The position numbers were made by a program, and so were the translations under genes. DNA of 63,838 nucleotides, counting the filler, from Perkinsus chesapeaki ATCC PRA-425 (lineage: Eukaryota > Protista > Perkinsozoa): NCBI GenBank assembly GCA_013115145.1. It is 12 parts of 12 records of this genome, joined end to end, with 100 filler letters (N's around TTAATTAATTAA, not from the genome) between each part and the next. Parts side by side here need not be neighbours in the genome. Positions count along the whole stretch, not along the records: positions 39,387 to 46,031 come from JAAPAO010001069.1; 11 more parts are not named here. One strand, given 5' to 3'. The notes beneath the pieces were generated by a model. That model saw only the letters and a list, made by a program, of their open reading frames with translations. It was not told the DNA's origin and did no database searches. Below, piece by piece: positions 1 through 46,131 of the stretch (within the stretch, counting starts at the first letter, position 1; each line of letters opens with the position of its first letter).

Positions 1-2690
1 GCGTGCGGTACTCCCTTAATCTCTGGAGATTTCACAGCCGCTACATTCGCAAGCTCAATCCGCTTATCATGATCTCGACAGCTTCTTGCTCATTATCGCC
101 GATTTGGACAGCATGAGCACCCACGGCAAAATGAACAGGTGCTCCCTCCACAGGTGCCACTGTACACTTGAGTCTCTTATTACCAATGTCGAACACCTCC
201 CTGATCTGCCATGTCTGAAACACGTAAGTGCGTATCTCTCGTGGACCACGAGTCGTGGTACGTATCCCAAACCATTACTTTCTCTGTGTGCACGCTTTCC
301 CGCAATAGAGAAGGCTCACCCCCACGAATAGAGGAGCATAGCTCTTGAGCCAGCCGGTGTAACGGAGCTGTTGGCACTTTTGGCATATAAACGGCCGACG
401 GGTCTGGGCTGGCCGGTGGGTTCTCTTTATCGTCGTTACTTGTAGATTCTTCAGGCTCCTGGTAGGCTTCAAAATTTGGCTTACTAGCAAAGGCCCCAAA
501 AAGCTTGGAAAAAGCGTCCAAGCAGTTTTTCTCGTTCTCGATGTGGATTCCACTCATAACTCGCTTGCGTAGATTGAATAATGCGTTTTCGCTCGGGTTC
601 AAACTGAAGACACAGTCAAACTGATAGAGGTGTCAGAATATTCGGATACTCGTCAGAATCGTCGGGACGCTCACTGCACATTTTAGCCCTTGGCTCACTT
701 AAGCGTTTCAGGTAGATATTCCACTCCGCTTTGATCAACATACTCAGTTTTTGGGCAGATAAGCTTATCAAATATTATCCCATTATCCTTAAGATGCACA
801 AAAAGTGCTAAATTAGGCTGTACTTTTAGTTCACAATACGTCACCCCATCTTGCTCAGTAGATACTACATCACCATCCTGAATGAAGTATAATACTATTT
901 GGGCAAACAACATAAGGTTCACCTCAAATTTCTCCGTCATTTCATGCATCTCCGTCGCGTGCTTGCTTCTCCCAGGCCCTCTACTCTGGACAGAAGAGAT
1001 CATCATCGAGTAAAATACGATAGTGGTATAGCGCATTTGTTCTGCGATATCGATAAAGCTGTGGGGGGCAAGTTGGAAAGTCGTTACACATCGGGCATTG
1101 CCTGCTGTCGTGCATATTCATTGCACTTGCATGTTGCATTGAAAACAGAGGAGACTGTCTCGCGGCGGAAAGTGTCTCGGGCAGAGCTCCCTCTCAACTC
1201 AGCAAACACATATAATCACTAGAGTGGTGTTCTTAGAGGAGTCAAATGATGAACCAGTAATGGTGTTGTCATCATATAATACTCAGCATCAGCTGTCTTG
1301 AAAAGCTTTTCCTGAGTACTAATCAGTGAGTACTATGATACTTTCATGGGCTTTCAGAAACCCTCCAGAAAAGCCTCCAGAGCTTAAGCCTGCTCATGGA
1401 GCTCTTTCTAAGGACTTCGGAATCCCTTTTTAAGGATTCTTTCTTGATCCCGCGTTGGACGGCCCCTGCCAGCTGCCGAAGCTTCCAGTCTGTGCATTCC
1501 CCTTTGTATCACCCACTGTTTCCAGAGTTCGTTCACCTGACTGCATTATCCAGCGCACTTAGAACACTAACCTGGCTAGAACTTCCTAGAAGGTTTAGTC
1601 GAAGTGCTGGTGCTTGCCATAACAAAGGCTTACCCGGTCTGCCTTCAGCCTCTTAGCCATAAGAAACGCTCGGAAGATCTCATCACAATCGAAGCTCATG
1701 TCCGTTGGAATCACCTGACACCCTCGTTTCAGCAGCTTTGACCGATATACCGGAACTGAAGTATAAGAATTCACTGGCCAAGAATAGACCTCCCTTACCA
1801 CTGAGCCTCTTGTCACAGTCCATAACAGGGACCCCATATAGCTCCTCGGTTGTTATGTCTTCTGGTAGCCTCAGTCCATTGCGATTTGTAAGTGGCGGAC
1901 TGTTGTGGCCATCCGTGCGCTGTTCGGGGCTACCGTCATCGCTGAAAACTTCCGATATGATGCCGCAACGCTGAAAGAGTAATAGGCTATTCACTGATAG
2001 TCCTCGAAAGTTGTGCCTCATCTAGCTGCTTCCTCTCTCTCATGGCGTATACCAGTAACACTCTCAAGACAAATTCGTTGACGTCTCCCTTTACAGAAGT
2101 CCAGCCGCATCGATTCATGAAATGTTCTAACAAGGAGCTCTGTGTTCGCCTAAGACAAGAGATAATAACCAAGTGTCTAACAACAACCCAATCACTGGAC
2201 GAATTCTTTTTCCCAAGGTCGTATATAATATTCACAGTCATCCGGTAGCGGCAAGCCGAGAACGGAGTAGCGCATTCGGTCTAACAACCGAATTGGGGTT
2301 CTGGGTACCTGGAGGGTCAATATACGATCCAAGGAGTTGGTTTGACCTACCAGAACGGCGCATAGGCTGCTCACTGAAGCGGTAGCGTTCCTTCTACTGT
2401 TCCCATCTTCTATTACCATAGCGAGGGCTAGTCGGGAACGCATAGAATTATGTCGTTTGATGCACTGTGTTACGATACTTATTGGATGATACTGAGAATC
2501 ATCGGGCGCTCGCAGCAGTTCGTGAATGCGTTACCCATGGTCGGGAAGGAGTTTTTAAGGTTGGCATCCTGTGACAGCGATGTACCGTCCTGCCTAAATA
2601 GAGCGATGTCAATTCTATAGCGAGTTTGGGCAAACCCTCTTGGTTCAAGCGATTCCTCAGTGCTCGTAGCCTTTCTCTGTGTGCTTTCCT
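1..2690 (-). CDS. Further minus-strand exons, probably the cytoplasmic tail of the giant membrane protein (or a separate hypothetical gene); runs off the window start
   Basis: Chain of minus-strand ORF pieces (2499-2756, 1987-2241, 1683-2021, 1595-1837, 695-1036, 180-602) separated by short GT..AG segments. The donor after ETL-aa|gtgagc (~697) joins in frame to acceptor cag|tttgaacccg (~603). Continuity with the upstream gene is not proven. Confidence 0.4.
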
Positions 2691-11600: not shown

Positions 11601-14284
11601 ACCTCCGTAAATGATACGTCTTTCACTTCTAGAATCGGCGTGGAGGCAATTACTGGCTTTGTGCTGACTATAATAGGTATACTCCACGGGCTAGAGGCCG
11701 ACGCATTCACGCATAAGACTCTAGCACGTAGCTGATATCTCATGGCTGGGATGAGGCCACTCACAGTACAATGGCGCTCACATGGTGATAGGAGAGTGGT
11801 ACGGTTACATCCAATTGCAGGCCTCCAGCCGTCACTCTCGTTGTCGGGCCTTGAGACCTCCACCGACCATGATAAAAACTCACAATCACGCAGGTTGCCG
11901 CTTGGCTGCCACTGGAGCTCTAGTGCGGTAGTGAATCGCTGGACAACTTCCAGACCCGTCGGCGTCAGAGCCCCCAACAGCGGTGTTCTGACTAGCTTTG
12001 TCGGTAAGGAGAATGCGCTCGAGAGAGATTCGTTGGTGCACAACTGGCGGGCTTTAAATCTGTAGACCTTATCCGATAGCAGATCTTTCACACTGCACGA
12101 TAATCCATCGCATAGACGGTACCCAGTCCAACCGGTCTCGCTCTCATGTTGATAAGCGACTTCGACCTGGATAGGATCGCAGTCACCCAGGCCACCGAAC
12201 GTCCAGATTAGTGAGACAGACGTCGATCCAGTCGCATTCACAAATAGTATCCTAGGAGGGAAGGCTTTTCTTATACAGTGCTCCTCTCCAATTGGAGTAG
12301 TAATAGAGACCTCCTCACTGTATCCAGAATTCGCCATGCTATTCGAGCACTCTACTTCGACTCTCATTGAGTACGTAGTGTTACAAGTAAGATGCGTGGC
12401 CGTGCAGTTGGGTTGGTTTGCCGGACTACTACATGCAGTGGACCAATCACTATCAGACGTCCTCGCTGATGCTCGATACTTTGGGCCTACACATTGCCCA
12501 AGCGAACTACCCTGCCACCTTAGTAGGACGGCTGAGGGACCCAAAGCGACCAATACAAGGCCAAAAGGCGCTTCCGCCACAAGAGGGTGAGTTGCGACTG
12601 TATTCGTCTCTGTGCTGAAATGACTGGTTGTGTTTGCTGCAGTACAGACAGCGCGCACCTTAAATACGTACTCAGTGTCGCTATCTAAGCCTGTAGCCGC
12701 ACAGGAATCGTTGCGCGTTGATGTCAAGTTGAAGCACCCTTCTGGAGTGGTCCAGTTCTGGGACAACGTCGATCGTCCTAGTACTTGCCACTCCTTAAAT
12801 TGGCAGCTGCCGAATGACCTCGGAGACAGCCAAAATAAAGCCAGAGTCGTTGTTGATAAAGGCTCAGGGTTGAGGAGCGAAGGAGCTTGGACTCGGAGAG
12901 AAGGAAGCACTATTGGATCACTCCATACTGACCAATAACCGGAGGCTTCCTCGTCTTGGCAATGCGCTCTCACACGGAAGTGATACATCCTTTCAGGTTG
13001 TAAGTTTTGGATCATACATCGTCGAGTATCCAACTTGGTACCACCGTCACATTCGACTTGCCCTTGGCTCAGAGGCAGATCCACCTTGAATTCAACAAGC
13101 CACCTTGAGAACTGACAGTCCTTCAAGTTGCCATCGTGGTACCAGGTTATCTCGATGCTTGAGGGGTTACTCAGAAAAGCCATACGACTTAACATAGGTG
13201 GTCCAGGCCGTCTCGGGCACCTTTCGGATATAGGGGTGATGATAGGGGAAGTTGTCGAGCTCATATTAGAATTAGCTAGTTTATTTGAACACACTTCTTG
13301 CACGGTAAAAACGTAAGTTGTTCCACAGTTCAGGCCCTGGAACACACAGCTGGTGCTCCTCCTATCGCGCAACCCTCCTGAACAAGACCCCCGGTCCGGC
13401 TCTTCCAGCGCACCGCGCCCAGCAGAGAACAATGGTTCCGCAAGGACTTTCCATGACTCGAATAAGCACTCTCCTGGGTGGCCTGGTTCCCATTCAACTT
13501 TCGCCCCGTTCCTTCCCACGAGAGTAGCGTGGGCGCCTGTTGGTGGGGAGGCCGCCACTGGAGGCACAGTAATGAATCTTGATGCTGGGCTGAATTGTGA
13601 CGACATTGATGCATCCTTGCAAACAACACGGACTCGAAATCTGTATTGAGTGTCTCTGGCATGCGTATAAGATACACATGATGTTTGGCAGAGGTTTGTT
13701 AGGCTTGGGGTGTCGCAAGCCCCTGGAGCGCCATGCCAACATGATTCAGTGCCGTTTTGGTATTGAACTTCATAGTGCTTGAATCGACATTTCCCCAAGT
13801 AAGGCAATTCCCAGTTTAGAGCGATAGCTTCAGCTCCCACGAGGTTGGCTGATATGAGTGTCGGCGGTCGTGGACGGGAGGCCAGCTTTCTGAGGATTAC
13901 GCAAAGGTTGAAAGTAGGATAGGAACGAGCAGGAATCTTGCCCACTTGTGTAGGTCTTCTACAGGAGGTTGTGTGGGAATAACCACCACAGTTGCGTTCC
14001 GATCATCCGAGTCCGGATTGTCCTTATTAACCCTGACAGTATGCACTTGAACGCTCGGAGTGCTACCAGTGCTAGTGGACCGAACCTGTCGTCATCTTCC
14101 TCGGAGTTCTGCAGCATCCGATTGGGCCCCTGCAACCGACTGGAAAGTCAACAGAGAGGCTATGAGACTGGATTACGCTGCTGCTAGGGCCTTCATCACT
14201 GGCAGGCTCATAGGTATCACATTGTCCGAGGTGTAGTGCAAATACGAAAACCAAGAACGAGAATTGGAGGCCCTTCTTGACCAT
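2692..14284 (-). CDS. Giant multi-exon surface/receptor-like protein: signal peptide, ~12 FN3 domains, ~5 YxLCWC repeats, GCC2/GCC3-type Cys-rich repeats, multi-pass TM C-terminal region
   Basis: Signal peptide MVKKGLQFSFLVFVFALHLGQC at 14284. FN3 motifs (W...GL..NT.Y.FRVR) in ORFs 11573-13945 and 6345-11003. CP.G.Y...C..C repeats. TM region with CYSGDH...LLWTVG...FLRRYGFIYLGYEDRCWYWEAV (3145-3789), typical of protist large multi-TM proteins. Confidence 0.85.
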
Positions 14285-16295: not shown

Positions 16296-17790
16296 ATGCC
16301 CAAATCGTGCACTCCTAGCAACGTTATACGAATTACTATATTCCTAAGCCTACTCCTATTACTTCTGCGACTGATGGTGCCGGGAAAGATTAGTAATGAT
16401 ATTTTCCCCCAAGTGCTTGATGACGGAGTGCCCGGCATCCCGTGGCAAGATTCTCGATTGACTATCGAGCAATCCACTTGCGTTGGTGGCCCGGTCCTAG
16501 TTATTATCGTATCCGGGGCCCCCAAGGTGGATAATATCGACGCGGAAGATCAATGCTCATCACAATTTGACATTCATCGTGAGCCGTTCGCGGCACCTGG
16601 GACTTTGACAATCCTGCGATACCTCGAGCGAGTCGCCAAGAATATGGATAGAATAGAAGAATATGTATAAGAATATACTCGCCAAGAATATGTATACTTG
16701 GATTCTGCTCATCGGCGCGACCACAGTGGTTCGTCCGAGCCGATTACTTCACCACGTATCAGCATTGCACCCAGATAGAGTTTACGGCGTTGGAGCACTT
16801 GGAGATGGGAAATGGTTTAAGTACAAATCTATCGTGCCTAGCTTCGCCGCTGGTATACTGCTATCTGCGTACTTTGCCAGGCGCATCGATACCAGTAAGG
16901 GGAAGATATCGAAGGAAGGTTCCAGCTGTCGCAGAGAACACGGCCTTAATCACGAACATTTTTTCGCGGCGTGCCTTCAAAAACACTTTAATACAAACAT
17001 AACCGATGGCAGCTCCTTCCTCGGCTGTTCCTCGTGTGCTACTGAATCTCTAGCAGGAAAATGCCTGCAGCGCAGTAGACATGAGGAGCTTCTCAATAAA
17101 ACTATCTTCACCATTATGACCGATAGTCCGGACGAGTGCCGCACAGCTATGGCAGCCTGGGCTATGCCCGTGAGCAATCGAACGTACGTCTTTACCAAAA
17201 ATGAAGCGAGCATTGTGCGAGCAGGGTGCCCAGAGGCAAAGATCGTTCAAGTACAAGACCATCGTTTCCCTGGCTGGTGGCACAAAAGACCGTATGAGCA
17301 AAGGGTCTTCGTCATCTTAGACTGGATTTCCAAGCAACTCAGCCAAGACGATATAAAGTACATCGTTGGGTTCGATTCTGACACTACTTGGAATCTACAG
17401 TTGTTACCGACCCTTCTGGTGGACATAGAGCCCAACAGAGCTTCCGTTCATGGGTATATGTACAAGGCATGGGACACCATATACCCCACTGGCGGGGCTG
17501 GCATCATACTTACTGTGCCAGCAGTTAATGCGTTAGTGATCGCCGCCACACACGGTGGTACTTGTACAATGGCGAATACGAATTTTGATGTGATGATTGG
17601 TAGGTGTTGTGACGCTGCTGCTGCTTCTAATGTATCCAGAATACATGTTGATGGTATGTGGCAGCAACCTATTCATAGTATCCCTCTGGCTGCTGCTGCT
17701 GCTGCAATAGAGGCTCCGTGGGGGGTACTCACTACACATAAATCAACATACAGTAGATTGAGTGTTCACGACCGTCACCCCTGCCAATAG
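16296..17790 (+). CDS. Type II membrane GT31 (fringe/core-1 beta-1,3-galactosyltransferase-like) glycosyltransferase, with a degenerate first and intact second GT-A-like domain
   Basis: N-terminal TM segment (ITIFLSLLLLLLRL), DxD motif (YIVGFDSDT), YPTGGAGIIL and FDVMIGRCC motifs. The two ORFs are offset at 16632-16692 (see findings). Confidence 0.75.
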
Positions 17791-17965: not shown

Positions 17966-20900
17966 TTAGCTGTGCTTTGACGATCCCTTGTTCTTGAACA
18001 AGCCGGTAACAGAAGAGAACTTGGTCCAAGCAGACACGCCTGTCTTCGACTGAGTGCTGCTAGACTGCTGTTGGGAATGCCTTCCACTACTCCGACCGCT
18101 GCTGTTCTCCTCGGACTTTGTTGAATTATGTTGATTGCTATGACGATGCTTCGAAGATGACTTCGGCCCACCAGATGAAGATGCCTTAACATAATCACCA
18201 GTAGCCGCAACTCGGACACCCTTTGAATCCTGAACCAACTGGAAACCGCTCCGAGCAAACGCGTCGTTCTCATCTTGCGGATCGAACAGGTGTTTCGGCG
18301 TCAAAGGCCCTGAATACGAGATATTCCATCATACAACCGGCTGTCCTCACCTGTTGTGGCGCTGGAATCAGTGCTCTTTTTGTAAAGCCCAGCAGCAGCA
18401 TCATCATCATCGGGGCGGTGGTGATCTGTAGTACTCGATAATAGAGCAACTGGGGGTCGCAGAGGCCGAGCAGGCGCAACGGGCTTGAACGGCTGAAACT
18501 GCTCGTCAAGATCTTCATCCTCTGGGCAGCTGAATATGCTAGATGACAGCCTTCCACCGCCCTCTCTAGATGACTGTGATTTATCCCTCGAAGAGGAGAA
18601 GGGTGACCCCAGCTGCTGCTGCTGCTGCTTTGGCACGGCTGCCTCTGGTGGCTTGGGCGTTCTTGCGCATTGCTGCTGCTGCTGTGGTGGTGGTGGGCGC
18701 ACCTGATAGTGCTACTATTTAATGCTTCATTCACCGCCTACTTACGGCACTAGTAGGTGGATTAATGCAATCAACGAAAAGGAATCTTGTAAGGTCTGCT
18801 ATTGCTAGCTCGTCTCCATGGTACAAGTCCACCTCGGGATCATTCTGACCTGAGAGATATTTTGCCAATACGAAGCCTAGGGAAGCGCGTACTTAACGTC
18901 TGTTTCCTCGGCTTCTCACACCCCTCTTTACAGCCGCCGCCGCCCTCCACCAAAGTTATACCGTTACACGACAGACATTTTACTTTAAACCCATATACCC
19001 TACCGCTGCCGCCGCCGCCGTCGATGGTAGAGTCACGATAAGGCAACAGCTTAACCGTCCTTATCTCGAAATGCTCCCTTGACACAGCGTTGTATTCCCC
19101 CTTCAACAGCTGCCATAGCAACTGAGGCTGTCTACTCCGCCCAACTAGTAATGCTTCATCCAGAGAATGATGCTCTATCGATAATCCCTCTCCATCACCC
19201 TTCTCTGCCTGAACCTCCAATGCAAAGACACAAGGCGCCCCCGCCTCCTGTGGCTGTAAGGATCCCTCCTCTACTTCACTTGTCAGACTCGTCGCCTGGC
19301 TCCCTATTTCCCCTCTGGGTTGTTGGCAATTCATAATGCCCACCTTATTGAGCCAGGAATCTCCAAGATCCACGCGAAACGTGAGGAACGGTGTCGGTTC
19401 CTCAGAGACGCCCGACCCACTTTCTCCACCATCAAGTGCTCCATGGACGGCTACAAAGGTTATGGTAGTACCGTCCTCCAACGGACCAAATTTATCCCCC
19501 TTCACGAGCAGGCGGCTTTGGTTAATGAATACCGAGTTACCCGACAGGTTGCTGACGTACACCCCCACCATGTGCCGCTGGTCAGTACCGCTGTTGCAAC
19601 GCTCGAATGTGAACACAAGATGATCTCGAGATATTGTAGTCCTCAGAGTTGGCGAGCTGACCAAAGAGTCGAAGAGAGCGACTTGGTGGTTTCTACCAAG
19701 TCGGAGGGGAGGGTATCTACACATTACATCCGAAGCCGTTAATACTCATACCGACATCTCCGCAAAGTGCCGAAAATTCAAGTATAATACTACGGTCCTC
19801 TTACTGTGCAGCAATCCTAGTTGACCTTGGACAATCCTCTCTAACTAACTCTCCTGGCAATTGGCACTTATGCTCCCACTGCATTATGAGAGGAGGCTGA
19901 TGCTGCTGGCTTGGAGAAGGGGACGGCGGTACAGAAGGTGATGACGACGATACCGACGAAGAGGAGGCGTTTTCCTGATGACGGTGGTGTGTTATCTTCC
20001 TTGGACTACTTCCACCCTACCCTAGTCGCATCCCACTGTGTGCATGTCAATGTGAGCAATGTAGCCACCGCCGGAGCCGCCCCCGCTGCCGTTGCTGCGG
20101 CTGCAGAGGTGCTCATCCCGTGTTCTAACTGTTCCTTCGCCGCAGCTGAGGTTGCAGAGCTGGACTCTGTATTGGAGAGGGGCGGCGGTGGAGGCAGATG
20201 AACGCTGCGCTGCGAGGATGATGATGCTCTAGGTGGGGGAGGAGGGGACTGACGACCAGCTTGACGATTGGTAGACTGCTGGTCAATTTGGAACTTGCTA
20301 AACGGTCGGAACGGCTGGGCTGGTGTACTCGGGGAAAGGGCTAAATACACAAAATGAGTAACCGATAAGTACAACAGTTTCTACCGGAAAGGTTATTGCT
20401 CTGACCAGTATGAGGCGGCATAAACAACCCAGGTTGAATATTGAAATGAGCAGCAGCTGGGAATGCTGATGAGGTAGTATTGCCCCCGATCATGAGGGCG
20501 GGAGAGGGCTGCGGTGTCACCGCTGCTTCAGCTGCTGTCAGCATCGCTCTCAATGACTTCACCACTTGGACGAATGTTGGCCTCGATTCCTCTGCCATTG
20601 ATGCACAGCTGAGGGCCAGCTCAGCAAGTTGCTTAGCGACGTTGGGAGGGTATCCAGCTCGAGGGTCCACCATAGATAAACACCGCATAAGATCGCCATT
20701 GAGATGGTTAACCAGGTAAAGTATCTCACCCGGTTTTGGTCCCGGGCACGCCGGTGGAGCGTTGAGCAGCAGTTCCAATAGGACCATGCCGAACGAGTAG
20801 ACCTCAGACGCCTCTGTAACCACTCCTCTTTGAATATAATACCTTATAAAATAAATCAAGAGAATACTAATAACATATCTTACGGGCAGGCATAGCCTAT

Positions 20901-21914
20901 GGTACCGCTGGCTTGTTTGACTTTATGTGATTGTCCGTGACTGAGGCATGCCAGACCAAAGTCTGCCATCTTCGCCGTAGAGTTGCGATCCAATAGAATG
21001 TTAGGTGACTTAATATCTCGGTGGAATACCTAAGAAGAGATGTCTCTGCCGCGGTTCGAGCCTACGACCTTACCTTGGGCTTGGCATTATGGAGATGACT
21101 CAACCCACACGCTGCATCAAGTGCTATAGAGAGTCGTAGCTGCCAAGGGAAGGGGACTCCTGAAGACCACGGCTGGGAATGCAGGATTCTGGTGGTGTGG
21201 ATACCTTCACGGGCACACTTCTGAAGTCGTACACTGACATCGCCACCAGAGAGGCATTCATAGACGAGGAGCCTTTGACTGCCATTGCGAGCAAATCCCA
21301 TCAATATAACCAAGTTAGGATGACGAAATTTGGATAACACTCGCACCTAAGGACAGGGAAGTCCAAGGAGGCTACATTGAACCTTACGCTACATCAGCTT
21401 ATCTACATCATTTTACTAAGTGGATTATTAATAGATTATCGCCGGTCTAGTCGCCTTTAAGAAGTAAACTGGACTTATGTCCACTTACCTCATCCTCGAA
21501 TCCGGCTTCATTAGGTAGATCCACCACCTTAATAGCAACTTCGGTCCCATCCTGTAGGGTTCCCTTGTAGACGCTGCCGTAGCTTCCCGACCCTAACTTG
21601 GCTGATTCGTCAAAGTTGTCAGTGGCTTCAGCCAGTTCGGTATAAGCATACTCCAGAGAGATCTGATTCAGATTACCTAAGAAATTTATAAACCTACTAA
21701 TACACAGTTGAAGCAGCATTACTGTCGGAGTGATAACGTTTCTCGTGGACAGAGGAGGTCCTGGCAACTGAAGATGAACATGAAACGTCCGCCAAGGGGG
21801 ATTGACTAGCCATTCTAGGGGGACTCTCTTGGACAGCTGGTAGACTGTAGAAATGATCCATTTAAACGAGGCACTTAAACGCCTCCTGGCTGAGAGAAAC
21901 GGTATTTTGATCAT
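17966..21914 (-). CDS. TKL-group (IRAK/Pelle/RLK-like) Ser/Thr kinase with two C-terminal FHA domains and a Q/S-rich tail
   Basis: [70 protein letters not shown] across exons. FHA motifs GR..(x)..SR.H..N twice in ORF 18840-19724. Exact start and stop uncertain. Confidence 0.9.
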
Positions 21915-22172
21915 CGCGCCCGTTAACCTATTTCGTATCTTGCACGGTCAACCTAAAGATACCCTTGCTCCAATCAACCTAAGACTCCTCTATCCTTTCT
22001 AATGTGATCCACTATATCATAGTACGCCTTCCCCTCCAATGCCCCATCATTCAGTTTGGAATCAAAAAGCTTAGAAACGTCGCTGTTTATAACTGAGCGA
22101 ATAATTCATTACGGAATAAATTGCCCGCAGCATAATCGTCTATTACTTGTCATATCAAGTTCACTTCGAACT

Positions 22173-23455
22173 ATGATGATGTTGCCTCCCTATAGTCAAG
22201 ACTCATCCTACTCCTCTCTCATGGAGTAAGTCACCATAATTTGCCAAATTCTTACGGGCTCGAAAATCAGGTATCTTCGGCGAATGTTCTATAAGAAGCA
22301 GATGGATTTGGAGTACACTTTCTCACAAATGGTTTACCTTTGTATAGCCCCTAGGAAAGTGTGCCAACTTACTATATACAGGTAATAGTGGGGGGAATGG
22401 GGCTCATGTGATGAAACGGCTATTGGCTTATTATCATATCAGTATGGGGGTTTCTATATTAAATGAGAATGGCAAATTAACGCAAATTAAGAATGTATTA
22501 TCAATGTTAACTATAAGTTATAATAACTAATTATAAACATAAGGTATTATGTGAATAAGGTATATAACAATATTATATACTCTGTAGATAATGGTGTACA
22601 TTATAATATTATATTGGGATACCAGCTACCATACCATTCAATAATCTAATCTTTTAGGCATCAAACAAAGGGTAGATGGTCTCGAGATGATCCAGCATTC
22701 GTTGTCATACAGGTGTTAATTAATACGTAACTAACAGCCATACAGTCTCACAACTACCTCTTACAGATACTATTCTTGGCAGTATCTGGCATTGCCTATG
22801 GAGTGTGCTTTTCTCATACGGTAGTTCAAATTTTAAGGTATTAAGTGTAAATATTATCCCTTATTATCTCTCCAGGGTGTTCCTTATTGGTATAGTAGTT
22901 CACTTCCTACTACTAGGATCTCTAGTTGCGGCTGTGTGTAACTTGGTAGCTAATCGCTATCTGCGGGTGAAGACATTTCAAGGACTGGATCAGGTGATAC
23001 CGACTTTTCCTCCGTAACATTCTGGGGTATACCCCCTTGGTTTTCTCAGAGAGTGCCATTCCTCTACAGTTTCGATGTTCACTGTAATGCCTTCTTCCCC
23101 ACATTTTTGCTCTTGTAAGTTTCATACCATATTTCCCTCAAATCATCTTGTCATAGGTATGTCCTCCAATACTTCCTATTCCCATTATTATTATCCAATA
23201 GAGTTATCTCCTGTATACTTGCCAACATCCTATGTAGTCTAGCATTAATATATTATTCTTATATAACCTGCCTGGGCTACTCAACACTACCATTTATCCG
23301 TAATGCTCAAGTGTTTCTCTATCCAGCTCTAGTGGGATTGGTAATAGCTCTAGCATATCCTACCATAATATCGCTTTCTTCAGGTTGCCGCAGTAGTGTT
23401 TACCGTGATGGGCATCAACCTGAGTGTGAAGTTCTTCCACATTCTAGGTGTCTAG
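22173..23455 (+). CDS. UNC50: UNC-50 family Golgi membrane protein
   Basis: Spliced exons give YLRRMFYKKQMDLEYTFSQMVYL, QTKGRWSRDDPAFVVIQ, LVANRYLR, YSFDVHCNAFFP and YITCLGYSTLPF, all UNC-50 signatures. Stop TAG at 23453-23455. Confidence 0.9.
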
Positions 23456-23556
23456 GTATGAAGGTATCATTACTACCAATAATATAACTGTATCTTTTTT
23501 ACTCTATTTGCTTGGTGTTATTCTTAAGTATATTTTACTCCTATTATCAGTTCACT

Positions 23557-24955
23557 ATGTTAGTTCTTAGTCCCGTCAGTCTCAATAATAACCGTTTCGG
23601 AGGATCGCTGGCTAAGGTGATTTTCATACCACTCCTTCCACAACTTTTCCTCTTTATAGAGATGGTTGGATGTCCGAATGCATGATATGTATGTTCGCCG
23701 AGCTCAACGTGATATGTATCGGAGTAGAGCAGCCTATAAGCTACTTCAAATTGACGACAGGTTTTCGATATTCCGGTAGTAGTAAAGGGGCGATAGTTGT
23801 GGGGGACATTTGCATCGCTCGGCACACCTACCTCGTGCGTAGGAGACTGGATAAAGAGAGCTCTCCCTAATAGTGGTGATGCTCTAGTTAGGGCAGCCTT
23901 TATTAAAGTGGATGCTTAGAAATGTTATTATCGAGTCATTAAAATGGCACTATATGCTTTTAATGAAACAATAGGTCCCGAATATTAACAATGGGAATAT
24001 TCAACGCCGCTTGCCTTCACTTTAGGAAAAACCAGCGGGTAGTTGATCTGGGATGCTACTCTGGCGGATGGTCACAAGTAGCATTGAAGAGAGCCAGAGT
24101 TGGGGAATCAAATAGTGTAGTTGTTGGGGTTGATAAGATACGGATGGATGCATTACAAATGCACACTTTCGTGCAAGGAGATGTAACCTAACTTCACTGA
24201 CAGGCTGGCCTATTGCCGGGGGTTTCAGATTACCGACCCGGCTACTATCGATGCTATTAAGAGAGCTCTAGGAGAGAATAAAAAGGCACATGTTTTACTC
24301 AGCGACATGGCGCCAAATGTCACTGGGAGGAGAGCTGACGACCATTTGGAGATTACAGAGCTCAATATGAAGGTTGGTGCCAGCTGGGCTTGTCCAAAGA
24401 TACGCCGTTGCAGACGTTGGATGTGATGGAGAACGTTCTCGGTATTAAAGGATGGCTTGTAATGAAGACATTCTTCGGGCCGGAGACACAGAAGCTCAGG
24501 ACTTTCCTGGAATCTAGATTTTATAAGGTATGGTATAGAGCTTCCCTAACACTACTCGGCCTACTATTAGGTTCGAGCGTATCGGCCGCATGCCACTCGA
24601 CCGGAATCGAGAGAGGTACCTCTACGGGAGATACGATCCTTGAGTTAGGCATTGCAGGTTTATCTGATTGGCAGTGGATATCGTGGCCGAGGCGTCTCTA
24701 TTGCTTCTGAAGTCAATGAGCGTGCTCGGGTTCGAAAGGAGGGATGGGAACTCGAGCAGCCCGCTAAAGTGATGTTGTTGCTTTGAAGGTGTCCAGCAGC
24801 AGCAATAGTGCTGGTAGGTACGGATACCACAGAATGAAGCTGGTGCGATACGACAGGAAGAGGAGCTTGAGAGGAGAGCTAAGACCTCGGCTGGTGTTAT
24901 GCCAGAGGAGGTTAGTAGCAGACCAAGACGCATGCCACGACAAAAGAAACGATAG
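23557..24955 (+). CDS. MRM2: RrmJ/FtsJ-family 2'-O-ribose rRNA methyltransferase (RlmE/MRM2-like)
   Basis: Exons give YRSRAAYKLLQIDDRF, VVDLGCYSGGWSQV, LLSDMAPNVTG, LVMKTFFG and PESREVYLIG, so the K-D-K-E tetrad is present. Start and last exon uncertain (alternative stop at 24786). Confidence 0.85.
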
Positions 24956-25039
24956 CATGTTTCTGTTTCAATAAGTTTCAGTGCATAAAAGAAGAGCTTT
25001 AGAGTTTCACAGTACTCGGGAATGGACACGACTTTTCTC

Positions 25040-27611
25040 ACTCGCCTGTGGAATTTGATACCGTATCCATGTCAAGTGGGTGCCTAACTGAAATGGGCAC
25101 CGGCCTGAAGGGTTGGGCATCCAGGCCAAGGGTGTGAATTGAATTGCTGACTTTCCATCGTTTACCAAGAATCGATGAGATCGCGTGCACGAGCGATACG
25201 TCAACGTTGCCTGTGTGTTTACAAGGTCGCGGTTTCACGGCGCTGCAATGCCTACCCTTTTTTGAGATTTAGTTAAGGGATCACTTAATTCAGATGTAAG
25301 AAGGCAAAAATGTGATACACGAAAAACGATCTCGGTGGGACTCGAACCCACAATCTTTGGTTCCGAAGACCCAACGCCTTATCCATTAGGCCACGAGACC
25401 ACTGAATTTTGGGTACCTGTCCTATTTGACACCCCGCGCAACAAAAGAAACTGGAGAATCATTCATCGTTTTGCATGTCCCTCCTCACTAGGAGCTTCTC
25501 ATCAAGCACTTCCAATAGTTCGCAGAACTCACGTTGTTCGTGAAGCAGTTGTCGAACCTGAACCTTACGATAGCGATCTATTGCCGCGACACCCACTTGT
25601 CGTATTGTAAGCTCTTCCGCGCTCTCCACCTTTGAACAAATACCCGGTTTGCGATCCCTCAGTAACGGCCGAATGTCCCTATCGAGGACAGTGGCCCAGT
25701 CTAGGCATATGTCCGGGCCCGAGTCCGGGTGGGGAAACCTGAATCAACCTCTCGTGTATCCTTACGAACTCTGAGCTACCCTAGATTCTCGAGAGCCATT
25801 CGGCATTTGATTCGATAATCTTCGGCCTCTTGGCCTGGTTTAAGGCCAGCGATGCTAGTGTGATCAACACTAGTAACAAAGGCCACTGCTGATGTCAGCA
25901 TTGTAAAATAATATCCTTCCTCACCGGAGGACAAACGCTGAGCTGGCCTGAAGCATTAGCGTCGCGATTTCCAGGATAACACTCTTACCTGAAAGCCTGG
26001 ATGAAGTTTATGTTACTTCTGAGCCGAGATGGTCTAGCTTTTATCAACACCCAGATGAGAACGGGAAGTATGTCGTCGGCCGAGCCTCCATCGCTTGACT
26101 CCAGCGTTCTAGTAATTACCCGACATGCATTCAGAAGACACACCAGTTTATCTTTAGGTGCTCGGTACTTAGACTACCGTAAGGGTGATGAAATATAACC
26201 AATACTGAGCTACCAAAAGACTGAGTTGCTTGATTGCCATCTTTAACCCTTCCTCATCGATATCAGGGCCCTCCAAATGCCGGCGTAGATCCATCCAGCT
26301 AAGACCTGCTAGCTTCCTCTCTAGTGCGGTGTCCGCCTGGAACAATATAAAAGTGAGCAGACATTATGCTGTGTACATCTCTATCTCGTTGGTCAATGTC
26401 AAAGAGAAGCCTCCTAGATTCCTGTGGGTCATCAGCCCCATAGCCGATAGGTGCATCCATCTCCAGGATGACAAACTTCTCTAAAGCCTCACAGGCATCA
26501 CGGCGTCTATCATGTCCCGCCTTATCGAGGGGTGATAGGGCCAGAAGGGACGACTGTCAAACGACACATCCTCATTGACGTTCGAATAATGGAACAACAA
26601 CAGAGACTTTAAATTTATATTTTAATACACATAGAGGCAAATACCTAATGTAGCCTCACTTCGAGTGATGATAAGAATTTATGGAGCATTCGGCCGGCCC
26701 TTTCTCTCGAATGTACCCCCTCACGCGGCCACTTCTGTTTTAGGGATGCCACTCTCTCGAACCTGAACGGATTCATACCCACCGGAAAATACTTATAGAA
26801 ATATACACCAGTTTTCGCCCGAGTGCAGGGTGATCATGCAGTAGCTCGAGAAACGCCTTGAAGCCCAGGGGATCTGACGACCATCTGTCAAGCCTAATTG
26901 TCATCAGCCTCACCATTATTAATCTGCTCTGGTTTAAGCTTTGATGCGTCTCCTCCGTCCTCACTAACCCTCCGACCTCTTATCCAGTCTACTGGTTGCT
27001 GTACTTTACCCAGCATACCACTCAACAACCCCCTGCCTGTATCATCTTTATCTGGTGATGCCCCTTCCTGTATCATATCAACACCGGTGACTATAGGGCT
27101 CGAGGCAACAGTAAGATCAACTATTCTAGGTCCAGACTGGGCGACCTCGCATGGCTCCCCTTCTATCTCGTCATCATCAACCTCGTCGGCTAAGATAGCA
27201 TCAACCTTGGATACTGTGCTCGATATGAGAGGTTCGGCATGGGGTGGTGGTGGCAGCGAGGAGGAATAGGATGGCAACGTCATTGAGGCAAGTGATAAGG
27301 GGGTAACACCAAAGCTGATGGTATACGGTGATTACCAAGCCTGGTGTTCATAACAGTGATAAGATCTTCCTGATCTACCACAGGAGCTGTGTTGGCACCA
27401 TTCCTCCTTATCACAGTGGCGTGTAAATTAATAAGCACAGTGAAGGCAGAGGCCGCAAGGAAATTTTGGTCGCTTGTCGCTTGTCGCATCGTAGGTCGCT
27501 TGGTAACCGTAATAAGAAAACCTCAAGCACGCCCGCTCCGGTATCATCCTTCTCCAGCACATCATGATCATTAAGTACACGGACGTTTACAAGTTGAAGC
27601 TTTTTACGCAT
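25040..27611 (-). CDS. Multi-exon hypothetical protein
   Basis: Coding-like minus-strand exons (ORF 26894-27283; EKFVILEMDAPIGYGADDPQESRRLLFD; ADTALERKLAGLSWMDLRRHLEG) with GT-AG boundaries. No domain recognised; extent uncertain. Confidence 0.4.
25327..25400 (-). tRNA. tRNA-Arg (anticodon TCG), with one extra nucleotide in the anticodon stem
   Basis: Reverse complement GGTCTCGTGGCCTAATGGATAAGGCGTTGGGTCTTCGGAACCAAAGATTGTGGGTTCGAGTCCCACCGAGATCG. Acceptor, D and T arms pair; followed by a TTTTT Pol III terminator. Confidence 0.9.
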
Positions 27612-39386: not shown

Positions 39387-39878
39387 TAGTCATAGTCGTA
39401 CCGGTCATAAGACCACCAGTAATAGTAATAGTTGTACCGGTCATAAGACCACCAGTAATGGTCATAGTTGTACCGGTCATGAGACCACTGGTAATAGTCA
39501 TAGTTGTACCAGTCATAAGACCACCAGTAATAGTCATAGTTGTACTGGGCACCATCCACTGGTAATAGTCATAGTTGTACCGGTCACGAGACCACTGGTA
39601 ATAGTCATAGTTGTACCAGTCATAAGACCACCAGTAATAGTAATCGTTGTACTGGGCACAATCCACTGGTAATACTCATAGTTGTACCAGTCATAAGACC
39701 ACCAGTAATAGTAATCGTTGTACTGGGCACAATCCANNNNNNNNNNNNNNNNNNNNNNNNNNNNNNNNNNNNNNNNNNNNNNNNNNNNNNNNNNNNNNNN
39801 NNNNNNNNNNNNNNNNNNNNNNNNNNNNNNNNNNNACTGGTAATACTCATAGTTGTACCAGTCATAAGACCACCAGTA
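39387..39878. repeat. 36/35-bp tandem minisatellite upstream of the helicase-transposase gene
   Basis: Unit TAGTCATAGTTGTACCAGTCATAAGACCACCAGTAA, plus a 35-bp variant (...GTACTGGGCACCATCCACTGGTAA). At least 10 copies, with an internal N gap. Confidence 0.9.
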
Positions 39879-39964
39879 TGGGGCATAGGAGCATAGTAAC
39901 TCAATTTCTTGTTTGTTCCTTATGTCAATTCATTATCAGAATTTTCATTATTTCTTGGACCACT

Positions 39965-42900
39965 ATGGCAAGCCTGCGTGATATGCTCGATGGAGAACAG
40001 CGCCGTACTTTCGATCGTATAACCGACCAAATCCGTGAAGGTCCGCCTGAGCAGAGGTTCCACTATATAACCGGTTTTCCCGGCACTGGCAAATCTTTCT
40101 TAACCAGAGCGATAATCGAAGATCTCGAAGCAGACCACAAAGTCATCGTCTTGTCATGGTATGGACTAGCTGCTCGGAGCCTGGGGGCATCAGCGCAGAC
40201 TGTTATGGCTTATTTTGGACTCACCTTCGCGCAGAGCGGGATTGTTGGTGACAATAGCTACTTACGATCCACGGATGCAACGCAAGCAAAGATGGTGCAG
40301 TATCTGCTCAAACACAAGGCTGGGGAGGTGAAATCTCCCAAGCTAGTTATATTGATTGATGAAGTCGGAGCGTTACATAGTACCGTCTTGGATGCTATGG
40401 CCGGCGCTATACGGGATGCAAGGCAACCTTCTCGGAACGAAGCTGGGGTAGATTTACAGGACGGCCCATTCGGCAATGCAGCTGTTATCCTGATTGGGGA
40501 CCCATGCCAGACGGGCAGAGTATCATTGACGACCAACTCACCAGATTACCCTCCCAATCTTTTTCCGACACAGGAATTCTGGAACTCGAATGCATGGAAC
40601 GAAATGCACCCCACCGTGTACTATTTGAAGACCTTTCATCGAGGCAGTGACGAGGGATACCTAACACTGTTGAGCGAGATAAGATCAGCCCCACGACTCA
40701 ACCCGGGCGTTCCTCAATTCTGCGCCCAGTCCATGACAGTGTTGCAGAGCATCAGAGATCGAGACGGCGGGAAACAGGCACCCAGGTAAGCAGGCATATT
40801 TGCGGGAAGTAAAGATCTAGGTCGTAAACTTTGCTGCGCTGCTTAGCGAGAAGTTGCTACTTGAAGTAGCCTGCTTTGAGATCCGTCAAACGGATCCCGT
40901 TACAGATTATAGTAGAATCATTCGCTGTACCTGAAGGTAAAACGAGCTTATCAACCCAGTCCTTGCGCCTTTAGTGCTTGCGTTCGTCGTATAAGCGGGA
41001 TCATCAAACTGCAGCTTGGCTCCTTGTATCAGGTTCGATCATGTCGTTGTTTGCTTGACTAATGCAGAAGTTGATCAACGTAACAAGGAGTACCTCCGAA
41101 CAATACCTGGTGAAGAGTATCAAATTGAAGCCATTGATACCTGTGGCTCGAAGAAGCCTGCCAGCAATATCGACTACAGGGCGGTATCCAAGCTAGGTTT
41201 TAAAGATAAGGTCGTCTTGAAGGAAGGCTGTAAGGTGATGGCTACAGTGAACAGTAGCGCTCGAGCAGAAAATGAGAAGTACGTCAACGGCTTGATGGGC
41301 AACGTTGTCCGAATCTACTGGGATGCAGAATCTCAGCCGGTGGTAGTCGTCAAATTCGATGGACTGGCAAACAACATTCATGTCAAGCGAGAGACTCTGA
41401 CTGTTCATAATAGTGATGGAAGCGTCCGATTCCAGCGCAGGCAGATACCGCTAGTGGTGAGCTATGCCGCTACTGCTCACAAGCTGGTGGGTTCTACACT
41501 GCCGGGAGTCTGGCTACACTTGCCTGCAAAGCATGGGAGACAAGACGATCTTATCAGGCAGTTCTGGGAGTCGCCTTGGCTTCACGGGCTAATCTATACA
41601 GCACTCAGTCGGGTGGGAAGTAGAGACAATATCCGTGTCTATCCACTAAGGAACACCGAGAACCCCTCCTTGGTGTATCCTATATTTTCTATGAGCCCTT
41701 CAGCACTAGAGTTTGACAAGATGTGCTTGCGTGATGATTGGATAGGAGCCACACAAGCCTTCAGACCCGTCGAAGCCCCTTCGAGCTCGAGCAGCGTGCT
41801 ACGCCCTGGAGTGGTAGATGATGCAGCTATGTCGCTATTGACTGGGCACATCGCAGGCCTAAGAAAAGAAATGGAATGCTGCCAGGCCAAAATGATGCTC
41901 CTACATCATTACACGACTACTCGCCGAAGCTCGGTATCTGGTGAGCCACTGAACCCCGTCTTCTTCTGCGCCCAGAATGCCTCGCTCGCGGCTAAGATTG
42001 ATGAGCTACCGCTCGAAGTCCAAAAGAGGTTCTACGACTTACTTGATGAAAAGCTCAACTTGACGAACCCAGCGCCAACCGGTGATGAGCTCCGAGACTC
42101 GATGTATGAGTTGGCTAGGGGAGTCGCTTCCGCGGCTTCAGCCCAATTTACCAATGAGGATATCCCTGCATCAGCCTCAGGCTCACGAAGATCGGACGTT
42201 GAAGGGAACCTAGTGGATGATGTCGAGGATGACGATGTCTCGGTTGATCGGAACTCTCCCGAAAGCGTATCAAGTGACGGGGAGAACCCACCCAGTAATG
42301 GCATGGATCTTGGTGACGAAGAGCTGTCGGAGAATGCGAGCGAGCCATCCGAGGAGAGTGACGAGTCTTCAGATGAACCATTCGAGATCCCACGTCAGCC
42401 AGATGACCCTCCCGCAAATGAAGCTGAATTTGCAGACGACCCTTTCATAGTGTATGAGGGCAATTTGCTCAACGTGGTGTCTCAGTATCTGAAGGAAAAC
42501 CCACACTATCGATTGGTTAACAGCACCCTGGAAGATCTCAGGAGGGATAGGAAAACCTGCTACCTCGAATGCCGTCGCTCAATCTCCTCTCGGAACGAGG
42601 GAGAAGAACCCACCAAAGGCAGCAAGCCTGATTGGAGATTGTGGCCGACGTTTACATGTCCTCTGAGAAAAGTAAAAGTGCACGGAGACGGCTCGAGATG
42701 CACCTTCTACCCCCTCCGCTCGGCTGGTGCAACATCAGAAGTGTGGCGTTCCCATACTCACTTCCCTGGGACAGAGCGCTGCAGGAGTGCAACGATTCCT
42801 CCTGATGTTATCGATGACTGGATTGTTTCTCTAGCATCCAACCCATGTTTGTCTACGGCTGAGCTCAAAAAGAGTAGCTATCAGAAAAATATGGCCGGTG

Positions 42901-44958
42901 GGTACTCTGCTAGGACAATGGAGTTCATAACTACGAAAGGCCTCGGGAATTATGAAGCAGTCAAGGCTGCCATACGATCCATTAAAGGCTCTCGAGATTG
43001 CGGACTCAGTGTAACTGCTTTTACTCGGGGCTTGCTGGAGATGTCGTGTGGCTCCGAGCGTCTGCGTGGTGAAATATCTGATATTATTAGGGCCTTGGAC
43101 GCTCTTGAATGCGGTACTCACACGAGTGATGAGTTGGAGATTGCTCGCGAAGCAGACCGGTGCTTAGTGCTGGAGAACATCCTATGCACCACAGCACCAG
43201 CCTCGCCCGAGTGTGCCTCCGAGGCTTTGAAGAGCTACTCAGCTGTCATCACTTCGCCACGCATGCTACGAAACCTTCGGTCAATTCAGACCATGGGCAT
43301 CGATGCAACGTTTAACTTGACACACGCAGATTTAGCTTTGGGTATCGTATGTTCTTTGCCAAGGACCTCTACGGCTCAGCCGATAGCAGTTGTGGTTATG
43401 ACTAAGGAGTCCACAGAGTGTCTTCAGCATGCCCTACGTGAACTTAGCAACGCTGCTGCATGTCTTGGGCTCGAAGGGAGTGATCCTCGCGAGGTCGTGA
43501 TGGATGGGAGCTCGGCTATACATGCCGCGGTGATGTCCCACTACAGCGAACTCGGCCATACTCCACCGCAATGTATAAGCTGTTTCTTTCACACTCTTAA
43601 GAGAGCAAAGGAGTGCAAGGCCAAGGCCCGTGTCCCCCCTCCTTTATGGAGGGAAATCAAGAAAGACCTGGACCTTCTCGGATCAGCGTACAGCCGCATC
43701 GACTGGGAACAAATGAGAACTCTTTTCATGCGGAAATGGACAGAAGGCAGGATATTGCCAGAATTGTAGTCGTTTTGAAATCATTTCTTCAGACTATGTG
43801 ATGGACCTTCCGTTAGCAGACCAAGGAGCCATCAGCCGCTTCCTAGAGGAATTCTCTGGCTACTTGGACCCTTCATCATGGCGAAGCAGGTGGTCCCGGA
43901 GCTGTAGCGAAGTGTGTGGGCCTAGAACGAATAATCAAGTGGAACGCTTCAACAAGGAGCTGAAGAAATGCCTCCTACCTTCGCGTTCAAGGCTTTCGCT
44001 CCACGAGTTCGTTACCTTCCTACGAAGTGAAGGCGACTGGGCTGCTATCGCACAGTATGGCCGTGATGATGTTAGGGGGCAACCGAACCAGAAGGTGAAG
44101 GACGAGGCTGCGCAGCACTTTGCACGACAGACGTTCTGTGGGATCCCATCAACTTGGTGCCTGGCTGGTCAAAGTGATTCTGAATGTGCACCTGCGATTG
44201 AGAAGTGGATATTTCTAACGAAGGCTAAAGACTCCACATTACAAGACAAGAGCATGTTGGAGCATATCCAAGAACCTGAGGCACGAGCGAAAAAGTTCCA
44301 TGGAAGTACATACGTATCCCTCAGCGAAGCTCACAGAGTGAAGAAAATGTACTCGATGGTCGGTTACTTGCAGTCAGGAGAGTCCCATTCTCTGCATGAC
44401 TTGTGGTGCACGTGCACTACATGGCTCCGTGAAACGGTTTGTAGCCATACGCTCTGTATACATCATCAAACCAGTGAAGCTGGTTCCCCGGCAAATGATA
44501 TATACTGGAAGACGGCGAATTGCAAGTTCAAGCGACCTAAGCAGCGCAGAACTGGCCAAGGCCAATTCGATGATAACTCGCTGCCTCACAATGCTAGATA
44601 TGGGCTGAACCCTCGTCGCAAAAAGAATGAAGCTGCTTCAACACAACGCAGATCGCGGCGACAGGCTCCTCCACGCGAAACACCGTCTGCATGTCCGAGC
44701 TCCGCTGTTTCTGAGGGGCACACAATAGAGCAGCATGAGCCTGCAGGTAAGGTTTTTGCTTTGGCATCAGTACTACTCATTTCTCACAACTACTGTAAAG
44801 TTCTGATTCAGGTGATCCGAAAGTCACCGTGGCTTTCACGGAAGGGCTCTCTGCGAGTTCCCGCCAACCACCTTTCATTCCTACAGCGGAGGAGGGAGCA
44901 ATGTTCGGTGGAGAGTCTGAAGAGCCGTACAACTCGAATTACACCTCACCGAAAGTAA
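39965..44958 (+). CDS. Pif1-family helicase fused to Mutator/MULE DDE transposase with a zinc-finger DNA-binding region and SWIM finger (~1500 aa after splicing)
   Basis: Helicase: GFPGTGKS (40073), IDEVG (40358), IGDPCQ, YVNGLMG, SYAATAHK, YTALSRV (~41610). Then, without a stop: C..C..HTH finger, GIDATFNL (D 43302), VVMDGSS (D 43503), CFFH (43581), TNNQVERFN (E 43942) and SWIM CTC..CSH (44407-44448). Introns 40786-41032 (GT-AG) and 43747-43792 (GC-AG) restore one frame. The 3' end may include further small exons. Confidence 0.85.
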
Positions 44959-46131
44959 GCCCTGAACTGTCACGCAAGCGGGGGAAGACGTCTTCAGAAT
45001 GCAATTCCTGAACCTCATGTAAATTCGATTCCCATAGCAGTACGGAAGCCCAAACGACGCAGGCGCTTAGATTATAACACCTTGGGAAGAAACGGAACAC
45101 GCACTTATCTGGATGAATCAGGTAATCAAGATCTCTTTATTGTGTTGCATTGTTAACATGTTGCTGGTTGTGATGCACCGATTTCTCTCAGAATCTGAAG
45201 CAAAGTGAATTATGGACTCCGCATTCAAGAGTCGGTACTACTTATGCATGATGAATCGATAAAACGAACTTACAATCCTTTATTCTTGATTTGGGATCAA
45301 TGGCTTTGTTGAGTTTCGAGAAACGCGCAGCGCGTCACGTGCTTATCGACTCCGATGTAGTAGCACCGCTTCGAACAACTTTCAAGTAGATTCTACGTAT
45401 TAGATTATAAGCCGAAGGGTATGCTCTTGCCACAAGAGTCTTGTGCTGCACAAGTTGTGCACAATTTAGACTCTTATCGGGAACCGTTTCATCTATAAGG
45501 CTCTCAGATCAGAGGCTGCTGAACTAACAGTTCAAAACAAGATCTCAGCCGATATAACCTACAGTGTAGGCTGCGATTCAGCCGCTGCATAATCCCAAAT
45601 TTATGCCTGGCGCAGGTGTGCCACTCAAAAACCGCGGGCGTTTCGAACTCGAGCCTTCGTTATTCATATTGTACCAGGTGGATTGAATCCACTAGATTCT
45701 AATAGAATCATTATATCTGCGTCTATTTTCCATATGGACTCTTACAGCAATTCTCTTGCTACTCGATCTTGAATGACACTGTGATACATTGTGGGCGACT
45801 CCTGTATTGCGCAACTCTATGCCAAGTACATTACAAAACCGCCCTGAAGGGCATGTCCTACGAATCACAGGCTGAGTCACAGGCTACGGCCGGGCTGCGG
45901 TCGGGCTACAGTAGCCGTCACGCCCTCGTCACAGTGTGATGCAGCACTTGCGCAGAACTTAACACTCTTGTGCGCCATGATGGCGCAGCCATCAGCAAGC
46001 CACACTCGATACTCTAGCCTAGAATATTCAGNNNNNNNNNNNNNNNNNNNNNNNNNNNNNNNNNNNNNNNNNNNNTTAATTAATTAANNNNNNNNNNNNN
46101 NNNNNNNNNNNNNNNNNNNNNNNNNNNNNNN

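Follow-up and report, generated by a model that had tools for sequence, protein, structure and literature searches.

The window analysed here is a stretch of 63,838 nucleotides (nt) made up of parts of the genome of Perkinsus chesapeaki, a protist that parasitizes clams, and its positions 39387-46031 represent one whole contig of 6645 bp. We interpret this contig as the internal, apparently full-length coding part of a Mutator (MuDR/MULE) DNA transposon in which a Pif1 helicase of superfamily 1B (SF1B) is fused N-terminally to the transposase, a reading to which we give a probability of roughly 0.85. The contig carries one multi-exon gene of at least 1544 codons, stop-free once intron 2 and a probable intron 3 are removed, that encodes, from N to C terminus, a Pif1 helicase, an acidic linker, a FAR1/WRKY-like zinc finger, a MULE core of the D-D-CxxH-E type and a SWIM finger. 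The helicase (~500 residues) and the linker (~250 residues) both lie N-terminal to the transposase. An in-frame fusion of Pif1 to a MULE transposase had been proposed in a preliminary description of this DNA, and the proposal holds, since the Pfam profiles of both halves score above their cut-offs and the two are joined within one uninterrupted exon.

The helicase half begins in exon 1 (39965-40785; this and all other coding features lie on the plus strand), which encodes the Pif1 N-terminal RecA domain and matches the Pfam PIF1 profile (PF05970) with 53.1 bits against a cut-off of 25.9 (E 4e-14). Walker A (GFPGTGKS, 40073-40096), Walker B (LIDEVG, 40352-40369) and motif III (GDPCQ, 40496-40510) are found there, the two Walker motifs as previously described, and exon 2 supplies YVNGLMG (41280-41300), motif V with TAHK (41469-41492) and motif VI with YTALSRV (41595-41615). 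A sequence search of the PDB with the helicase half returned only Pif1 helicases (human, yeast and bacterial, E down to 7e-13). Across 15 family members, at 24-45% identity, the Walker A lysine, the Walker B DE, PFGG..GDxxQ, HK..G and YxxLSR are kept, and the family motifs align with those of stand-alone Pif1 proteins. The helicase match begins at residue 7-8 after the ATG, with only a tandem array directly upstream, and neither a Rep/HUH domain nor Helitron_like_N was matched on the contig by Pfam or by a survey of open reading frames (ORFs); the helicase is thus N-terminal to the DDE domain and not preceded by a Rep, in agreement with the preliminary description. No other long ORF was present on the contig or in the 15-kb P. 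olseni element described below.

The transposase half is reached within exon 2 (41033-43746), an open frame of 904 codons that runs from the C-terminal half of the helicase through the linker (~41700-42500, with an acidic stretch at ~42216-42242) and the FAR1/WRKY-like zinc-finger DNA-binding domain (42558-42770; CYLEC 42558-42572, TCPLRKVKV 42654-42680, HTH 42750-42770) into the catalytic core. Pfam MULE (PF10551) matched residues 761-862 of the 917-codon ORF with 36.4 bits against a cut-off of 27.6 (E 7e-9), and the same profile matched seven relatives. The first aspartate lies in GIDATF (IDATF, 43296-43313), the second in VMDGS (VMDG, 43497-43511) and the CxxH motif is CFFH (43581-43592), so that the Pif1 and MULE motifs, the acidic linker and the Cys/His finger all occur where they had been placed. 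The catalytic glutamate, in TNNQVERFN (43927-43953), belongs to exon 3 (43793-44746) and is reached only when the GC-AG intron 43747-43792 is spliced. The same exon carries the SWIM-type CxC..CxH finger (44407-44448), which shows the conserved CxC-x9-CxH pattern and is named SWIM-type by UniRef in several relatives, but which the Pfam SWIM model did not match; the earlier assignment of TNNQVE and SWIM to this exon therefore stands for both patterns and not for the profile. In up to 16 members the columns D (DxTFN), D (DGS), C[YF]FH, TNNxVE[RK]FN and CxC..CxH are kept.

We modelled residues 700-1185 of the annotated protein FOL47_000414 (P0001) with AlphaFold (AF2) from a 22-sequence family alignment and obtained a mean predicted local distance difference test (pLDDT) score of 86.8. 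The top Foldseek matches of the model in Swiss-Prot were FRS10 (4e-13), FAR1, FHY3, K. lactis alpha3, ZSWIM9/3/1 and Drosophila FB-NOF, with the IS256-type bacterial transposases IS406 and IS1081 also found; TM scores were low (0.2-0.3), the model being multi-domain. Foldseek alignments begin in the FAR1 DNA-binding region, which identifies the C..C..HxH finger as the usual MULE DNA-binding domain and indicates that the fusion partner of the helicase is a complete MULE transposase. A PDB sequence search with the transposase half returned nothing. Judged by their conserved residues, both halves look functional and under selection.

Relatives in Perkinsus and the ends of the elements

A HMMER full-library search yielded about 50 clusters of relatives at 50% identity. 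All named relatives belong to P. chesapeaki, P. olseni or P. marinus, and the others stem from one sequencing run and one metagenome, and the gene models of many, with clusters mapped on the window model, run from helicase through linker to transposase. We compared loci of P. marinus (L001, L003), P. olseni (L002, L005, L010) and P. chesapeaki (L004, L007, L008) together with L009. tblastn of the fetched loci (L001-L005, L007-L010) showed the parts in unchanged order, at 27-60% identity, and divergent fused copies are thus present in all three species. Exon 2 of the window copy holds both helicase motifs IV-VI and the DDE core, single ORFs of 930-960 codons cross the helicase-transposase junction in L001, L003 and L005, and even between the closest copies protein identity is no more than 57-58%. 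Because a junction within a single exon recurs in five or more divergent copies of three species, a mis-join and a pair of separate genes are both excluded. The phylogenetic tree splits the family into five or more subfamilies, all of them represented in two to three Perkinsus species, indicating that the family diversified before those species did.

Gene neighbourhoods differ at every locus; neither a mis-join nor a single conserved syntenic copy was found, and both profiles match. Several copies are truncated, L002 and L007 at the 5′ end and L001 at the 3′ end. L003 also holds part of a second family member, restricted to the helicase (6-1938, minus strand) and arranged head-to-head with the full-length copy (8372-13093); ACA microsatellites and tandem repeats of 268/295 nt fill the 6 kb between the two.

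Long terminal inverted repeats (TIRs) were identified at three loci, two of which also show target-site duplications (TSDs). The P. chesapeaki element at L008 spans 7.35 kb and has TIRs of ~115 nt (a 109-nt inverted match, 98%), with a perfect 9-bp direct repeat, CCTTCACAC, immediately outside its ends. The P. olseni element at L005 spans 15.0 kb and has TIRs of ~570 nt (a 564-nt match at 99%; 579 nt and 98% by the repeat tool), again with a perfect 9-bp direct repeat, CTGTTAAAG, immediately outside. At L010, also in P. olseni, the 10.45-kb element encoding the full-length protein P0190 ends in a 110-nt inverted segment and inverted arrays of 151-153-nt units, 1.2-1.5 kb in total. A duplication of 9 bp is typical of Mutator. 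The chance match of a given 9-mer is ~4e-6 and two independent elements share the same TIR/TSD geometry, so that coincidence is negligible; the lengths also fall within the 8-11 bp reported for Mutator target duplications (PMC6446971). At the ends of the two elements that have TSDs, the six terminal bases match each other poorly, GCATAG versus GCATCC in L008 (5558-5563 / 12906-12911) and GCTTAC versus GGCCAG in L005 (2696-2701 / 17724-17729), and the remaining TIR is 98-99% identical. The left TIR of L008 abuts helicase motif II, with Walker A deleted, and this element is an internal-deletion derivative. Interrupted gap repair leaves internal deletions in cut-and-paste elements such as Mutator, and the L008 deletion is of this kind.

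Every full-length copy also has a tandem array at the 5′ end, with units of 36 nt in the window copy, 87 nt in L003 (7716-8154), 32 nt over 3.5 kb in L005 (4318-7864) and 151-153 nt in L010 (8699-9777). The units are unrelated in sequence, and the arrays end 75-220 nt before the start codon (~75 nt in the window copy). The L010 array belongs to the terminal inverted repeat, and the 36-nt array of the window copy is probably likewise the inner, repeat-laden part of the left end of its element. We infer that an inverted copy of this array lies past 46031, which fits the break of a Logan contig ~670 nt further on. In two DNA data sets, words of the 36-nt array were 10-30 times deeper than those of the unique part. 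Repeats also occur inside the genes: intron 1 of L001 (10198-10865) contains 15.6 copies of a 43-nt unit, intron 1 of L010 (10833-12117) contains tandem arrays of 52/135-nt units, and that of L005 contains an inverted pair of 182 nt (8944-9125 / 9202-9383), possibly a small element nested in the intron.

Two further proteins come from JGI metagenome 3300059473. P0089, which is among the best non-family matches of the helicase, consists of a single ORF of 1168 codons that encodes a canonical Pif1 and, downstream of it, a MULE core. Its alignment with the Perkinsus family is confined to the DDE core (~24% identity), so it represents either an ancient relative or the outcome of a separate fusion event. 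In P0157, which nests near the Perkinsus family in the tree, an OTU protease takes the place of the helicase, and the DNA-binding domain, DDE core and SWIM finger share 29% identity with those of the family. P0089 and P0157/P0021 are attributed to a single organism with AT-rich coding sequence. Word-based homologue searches with P0089 and P0157 each recovered only the query itself.

Competing explanations and the possible role of the helicase

Several observations weigh against a mobile element on this contig. No significant inverted repeat, and in particular no inverted match to the 5′ array, was found in the window contig; the ends of this copy lie off the contig, and its assignment to the mobile class is based on homology and the shared 5′ array architecture. 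TIR searches in L001, L003 and L007 gave nothing beyond chance, and L002 has only a 63-nt inverted pair at 82% identity without a TSD. The expectation that copies would show TIRs and 8-10-bp TSDs is thus borne out for the TIRs of L005, L008 and L010 and the TSDs of L005 and L008, and not for L001, L002, L003 or L007, nor for the TSD of L010, where none was detected despite the TIRs. Copy number per genome is low, with about one to two members per species per subfamily, as a host gene family would have. Most members are without the canonical SQG in motif V. Finally, no RNA contig on the gene was found in two P. chesapeaki RNA contig sets or in searches of RNA runs. To the right of the L010 element lies a gene (18207-26535) with faint zf-CCHC and aspartic-protease matches. 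By these domains it is probably a long terminal repeat (LTR) retroelement, and its position at the right end may account for the missing duplication.

The preliminary description had left two readings standing, a transposon lineage that captured a Pif1 helicase and a domesticated chimera, and the recurrent fusion, the long TIRs and the 9-bp TSDs of the relatives support the former. Under the latter, an old Pif1-MULE chimera would have founded a host gene family with a cellular role, for example in programmed rearrangement or repair, of which the window copy would be a paralogue. Domesticated MULEs have parallels in FHY3/FAR1, K. lactis alpha3 and MULE-derived genes of ciliates, and such a history would agree with the low copy number, with the presence of each subfamily in two to three species (compatible with vertical descent), with the retention of the catalytic residues of both domains over deep divergence, with conserved intron positions and with the several loci that lack TIRs, among them L001, whose copy sits between ordinary genes. 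We nevertheless consider it improbable, given near-identical long TIRs and perfect 9-bp TSDs around two members, one of them a TIR-bounded deletion derivative, the many truncated or fragmentary copies (L002, L007, L001 and the second, inverted fragment of L003) and the varying neighbourhoods of copies that lie in repeat-rich, assembly-breaking contigs.

The helicase could instead stem from a decayed Helitron located next to or inside a MULE, the fusion being a local accident; this we regard as very unlikely. In its favour, Pif1-like helicases of eukaryotic mobile elements are otherwise known from Helitrons, as stated in the part of PMC8788227 consulted. Against it speak the failure to find a Rep/HUH domain on the contig or in the 7-15-kb elements, a helicase that begins at the ATG, a helicase-linker-transposase order that is constant in all subfamilies, and ends formed by TIRs with 9-bp TSDs, unlike those of Helitrons. 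The best non-family matches of the helicase are stand-alone Pif1 proteins at 24-30% identity, several of them with HTH_40 or HRDC domains, which are typical of prokaryotic Pif1. In a Pfam scan, none of the 90 nearest non-family helicases carried Helitron_like_N; these neighbours weakly disfavour a Helitron origin. The Pif1-only clusters found in the ESM Atlas (scores 0.78) are leads at best. Least probable of all, with hardly a chance of being correct, is an artefact of assembly or annotation that joined two neighbouring genes or unrelated sequences in a repeat-bounded contig. Such an error might be suspected in a contig of only 6.6 kb with a 100-N gap and repeats at its ends, and in a gene whose NCBI model is demonstrably imperfect, but helicase and transposase meet within an exon of 904 codons, well away from the gap, two DNA runs yield contigs (possibly the source data) that span 39850-45800 unbroken and with zero differences, and the fusion recurs in independent assemblies of three species and in the single ORF of P0089.

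Under the transposon reading, the long TIRs and 9-bp TSDs of the relatives indicate movement by DDE cut-and-paste. Excision would proceed as in CxxH-type MULEs, through hairpins on the flanking DNA, and the tethered Pif1 would act as an ATP-driven accessory of transposition. Pif1 is known for its role in break-induced replication. We favour a role of the fused helicase in repair, in which it would power long-tract synthesis, coupled to recombination, over the double-strand gap that excision leaves in the donor site. The sister or a homologous copy would serve as template for restoring the repeat-laden element of 7-15 kb, so that transposition would in effect be replicative. Refilling of the donor gap in this manner would be of use to elements that are long and rich in repeats and whose host is a polyploid, mostly clonal protist. 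The main alternative is that the helicase unwinds the long, tandem-repeat-rich ends for synapsis. That the fused Pif1 makes a cut-and-paste Mutator effectively replicative, either by a refilling of the gap resembling break-induced replication or by strand displacement from a nicked end, is a tentative and rather doubtful proposal. Such movement would parallel, in a eukaryotic DDE element, the pairing of Rep with Pif1 in Helitrons, and P0089 suggests that it may have arisen more than once.

Comparison with known systems

The transposase half is that of Mutator/MuDR (MuDR MURA, Muta1, Hop and Jittery, with the domesticated FHY3/FAR1, ZSWIM and alpha3), with the same MULE domain, D-D-CxxH-E residues, N-terminal zinc finger and C-terminal SWIM pattern; a SWIM finger is frequent in the superfamily, though not obligatory. 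The transposase gene of Mutator/MuDR likewise contains introns, and long TIRs with 9-bp TSDs are shared by the relatives described above. The Perkinsus gene differs in adding an N-terminal Pif1 and a linker, and the Perkinsus elements differ in that their TIRs can be tandem arrays of up to 1.5 kb and that the outermost 6 nt are imperfect. For Muta1, the consulted part of PMC5499845 describes a CxxH-type mechanism with a hairpin on the flanking DNA. A eukaryote-wide survey of MULEs makes no mention of helicases or alveolates (PMC6446971), and the Oxytricha genome paper counted 21 MULE-domain proteins in P. marinus.

Helitrons (RepHel) are likewise mobile and encode a transposition protein with a Pif1-family SF1B helicase. 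They differ in having an HUH Rep upstream of the helicase, whereas the Perkinsus element has no Rep, an N-terminal helicase and a DDE RNase-H nuclease, and they have neither TIRs nor a TSD, insert between A and T and carry a 3′ hairpin, in contrast to the TIRs and 9-bp TSDs of the Perkinsus relatives. The portion of PMC8788227 that we consulted, which describes Pif1-like helicases in eukaryotic transposons for Helitrons, does not mention MULE, Mutator or DDE elements.

Helicases have also joined DDE superfamilies elsewhere. In the sections consulted of PMC10799480 and PMC9587614, AcademH and KolobokH are described as helicase-encoding lineages of such superfamilies and thus follow the same concept, a helicase added to the transposase gene of a cut-and-paste lineage. 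According to these sections, their helicases belong to SF2 (DEAD/Helicase_C, RecQ), their transposases to Academ and Kolobok, and their hosts are animals and fungi, whereas the Perkinsus family has an SF1B Pif1 with a MULE transposase in an alveolate; in KolobokH, moreover, the helicase is downstream of the transposase and the TSDs are 4-bp TTAA, as opposed to an upstream helicase and Mutator-type 9-bp TSDs in Perkinsus. Addition of an accessory enzyme to a MULE is seen as well in KI-MULE (ULP1 protease) and in the OTU-MULE P0157, where it is a cysteine protease and not a helicase.

We could not find a helicase-carrying Mutator lineage described: a full-text literature search, outside of which Repbase entries lie, returned no account of a Pif1-MULE element. 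Proteins of the family are already present in public databases under automatic names. If our interpretation is correct, the family would mark the third time that a DDE superfamily independently recruited a helicase, and the first time that this helicase was of the Helitron type. In the known DDE lineages, AcademH and KolobokH, the role of the helicase is likewise only inferred. Yeast assays for MULE transposition exist, and the family would therefore offer a tractable system for the contribution of the helicase, be it to donor-gap repair, to the handling of long structured ends or to target choice.

Gene structure, contig and annotation

Intron 1 (40786-41032; 247 nt, phase 2, GT-AG, cag/GTAAGC...TATCAG/g) separates exons 1 and 2, and its junction (..APR/F[DE]H..) is found in L001, L003, L005 and L010 as well. 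The preliminary description had given an ORF of 41016-43769; the frame is indeed open over its 917 codons, but exon 2 begins at 41033, the preceding bases being part of intron 1. The break between exons 2 and 3 was also considered as a frameshift, and this was rejected after alignment with P. marinus and P. olseni copies, which have an intron at exactly that codon position, in phase 1.

Intron 2 (43747-43792; 46 nt, phase 1, aag/GCAGGA...TTCTTCAG/ac) keeps its position in eight copies, among them L001, L002, L003, L005, L007 and L010, which cover the three species, and has the same length in P. marinus L001. The introns of these six loci all start with GT. The GC donor (43747-43748) is unique to the window copy and shows no alternative base in two DNA data sets. 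If intron 2 remained unspliced, translation would stop at 43767-43769 and the catalytic glutamate and the SWIM finger would be lost. The donor is therefore either that of a rare GC-AG intron or the product of a T-to-C change that abolishes splicing and cuts the transposase short of the glutamate, and the window copy may, on its sequence, be disabled through it.

The best database match to the gene is its own annotated protein P0001 (1185 amino acids; precomputed Pfam PIF1 and MULE), with which the end of exon 1 agrees. The NCBI model does not include intron 43747-43792 and terminates at 43769, and as a consequence lacks the catalytic glutamate and the SWIM finger. NCBI models of Pif1-MULE genes are truncated or split, and the elements with their arrays account for some of the assembly breaks in Perkinsus genomes. 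At this locus, one end of the Logan contig stops within the 5′ array and the other ~670 nt beyond 46031.

The 36-nt tandem array (39387-39888) comprises at least 8 copies with 86-100% identity and includes the 100-N assembly gap (39737-39835). Outside the array the contig has ~50% G+C and is dominated by three long ORFs on the same strand. Besides the glutamate and SWIM motifs, exon 3 carries a basic tract resembling a nuclear localization signal (44530-44550), and the corresponding region is continuous in the P. olseni protein P0005. A tentative intron 3 (44747-44811; 65 nt, cag/GTAAGG...ATTCAG/g), after whose removal the frame is open, leads to a tentative exon 4 (44812-44955), for which the frame and a self-consistent tblastn of the model onto the contig speak. 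Further small 3′ exons, up to ~45250, are possible. The 3′ region (44956-46031) shows no recognisable coding sequence or inverted repeat, and the right end of the element lies beyond the contig. In L002, the P. olseni copy closest to that of the window, the C terminus of P0005 (6774-7065) is a Cys/His-rich tail with a faint PHD-like match (E 0.9); in place of such a tail, the window copy has short, tentative 3′ exons with a basic tract.

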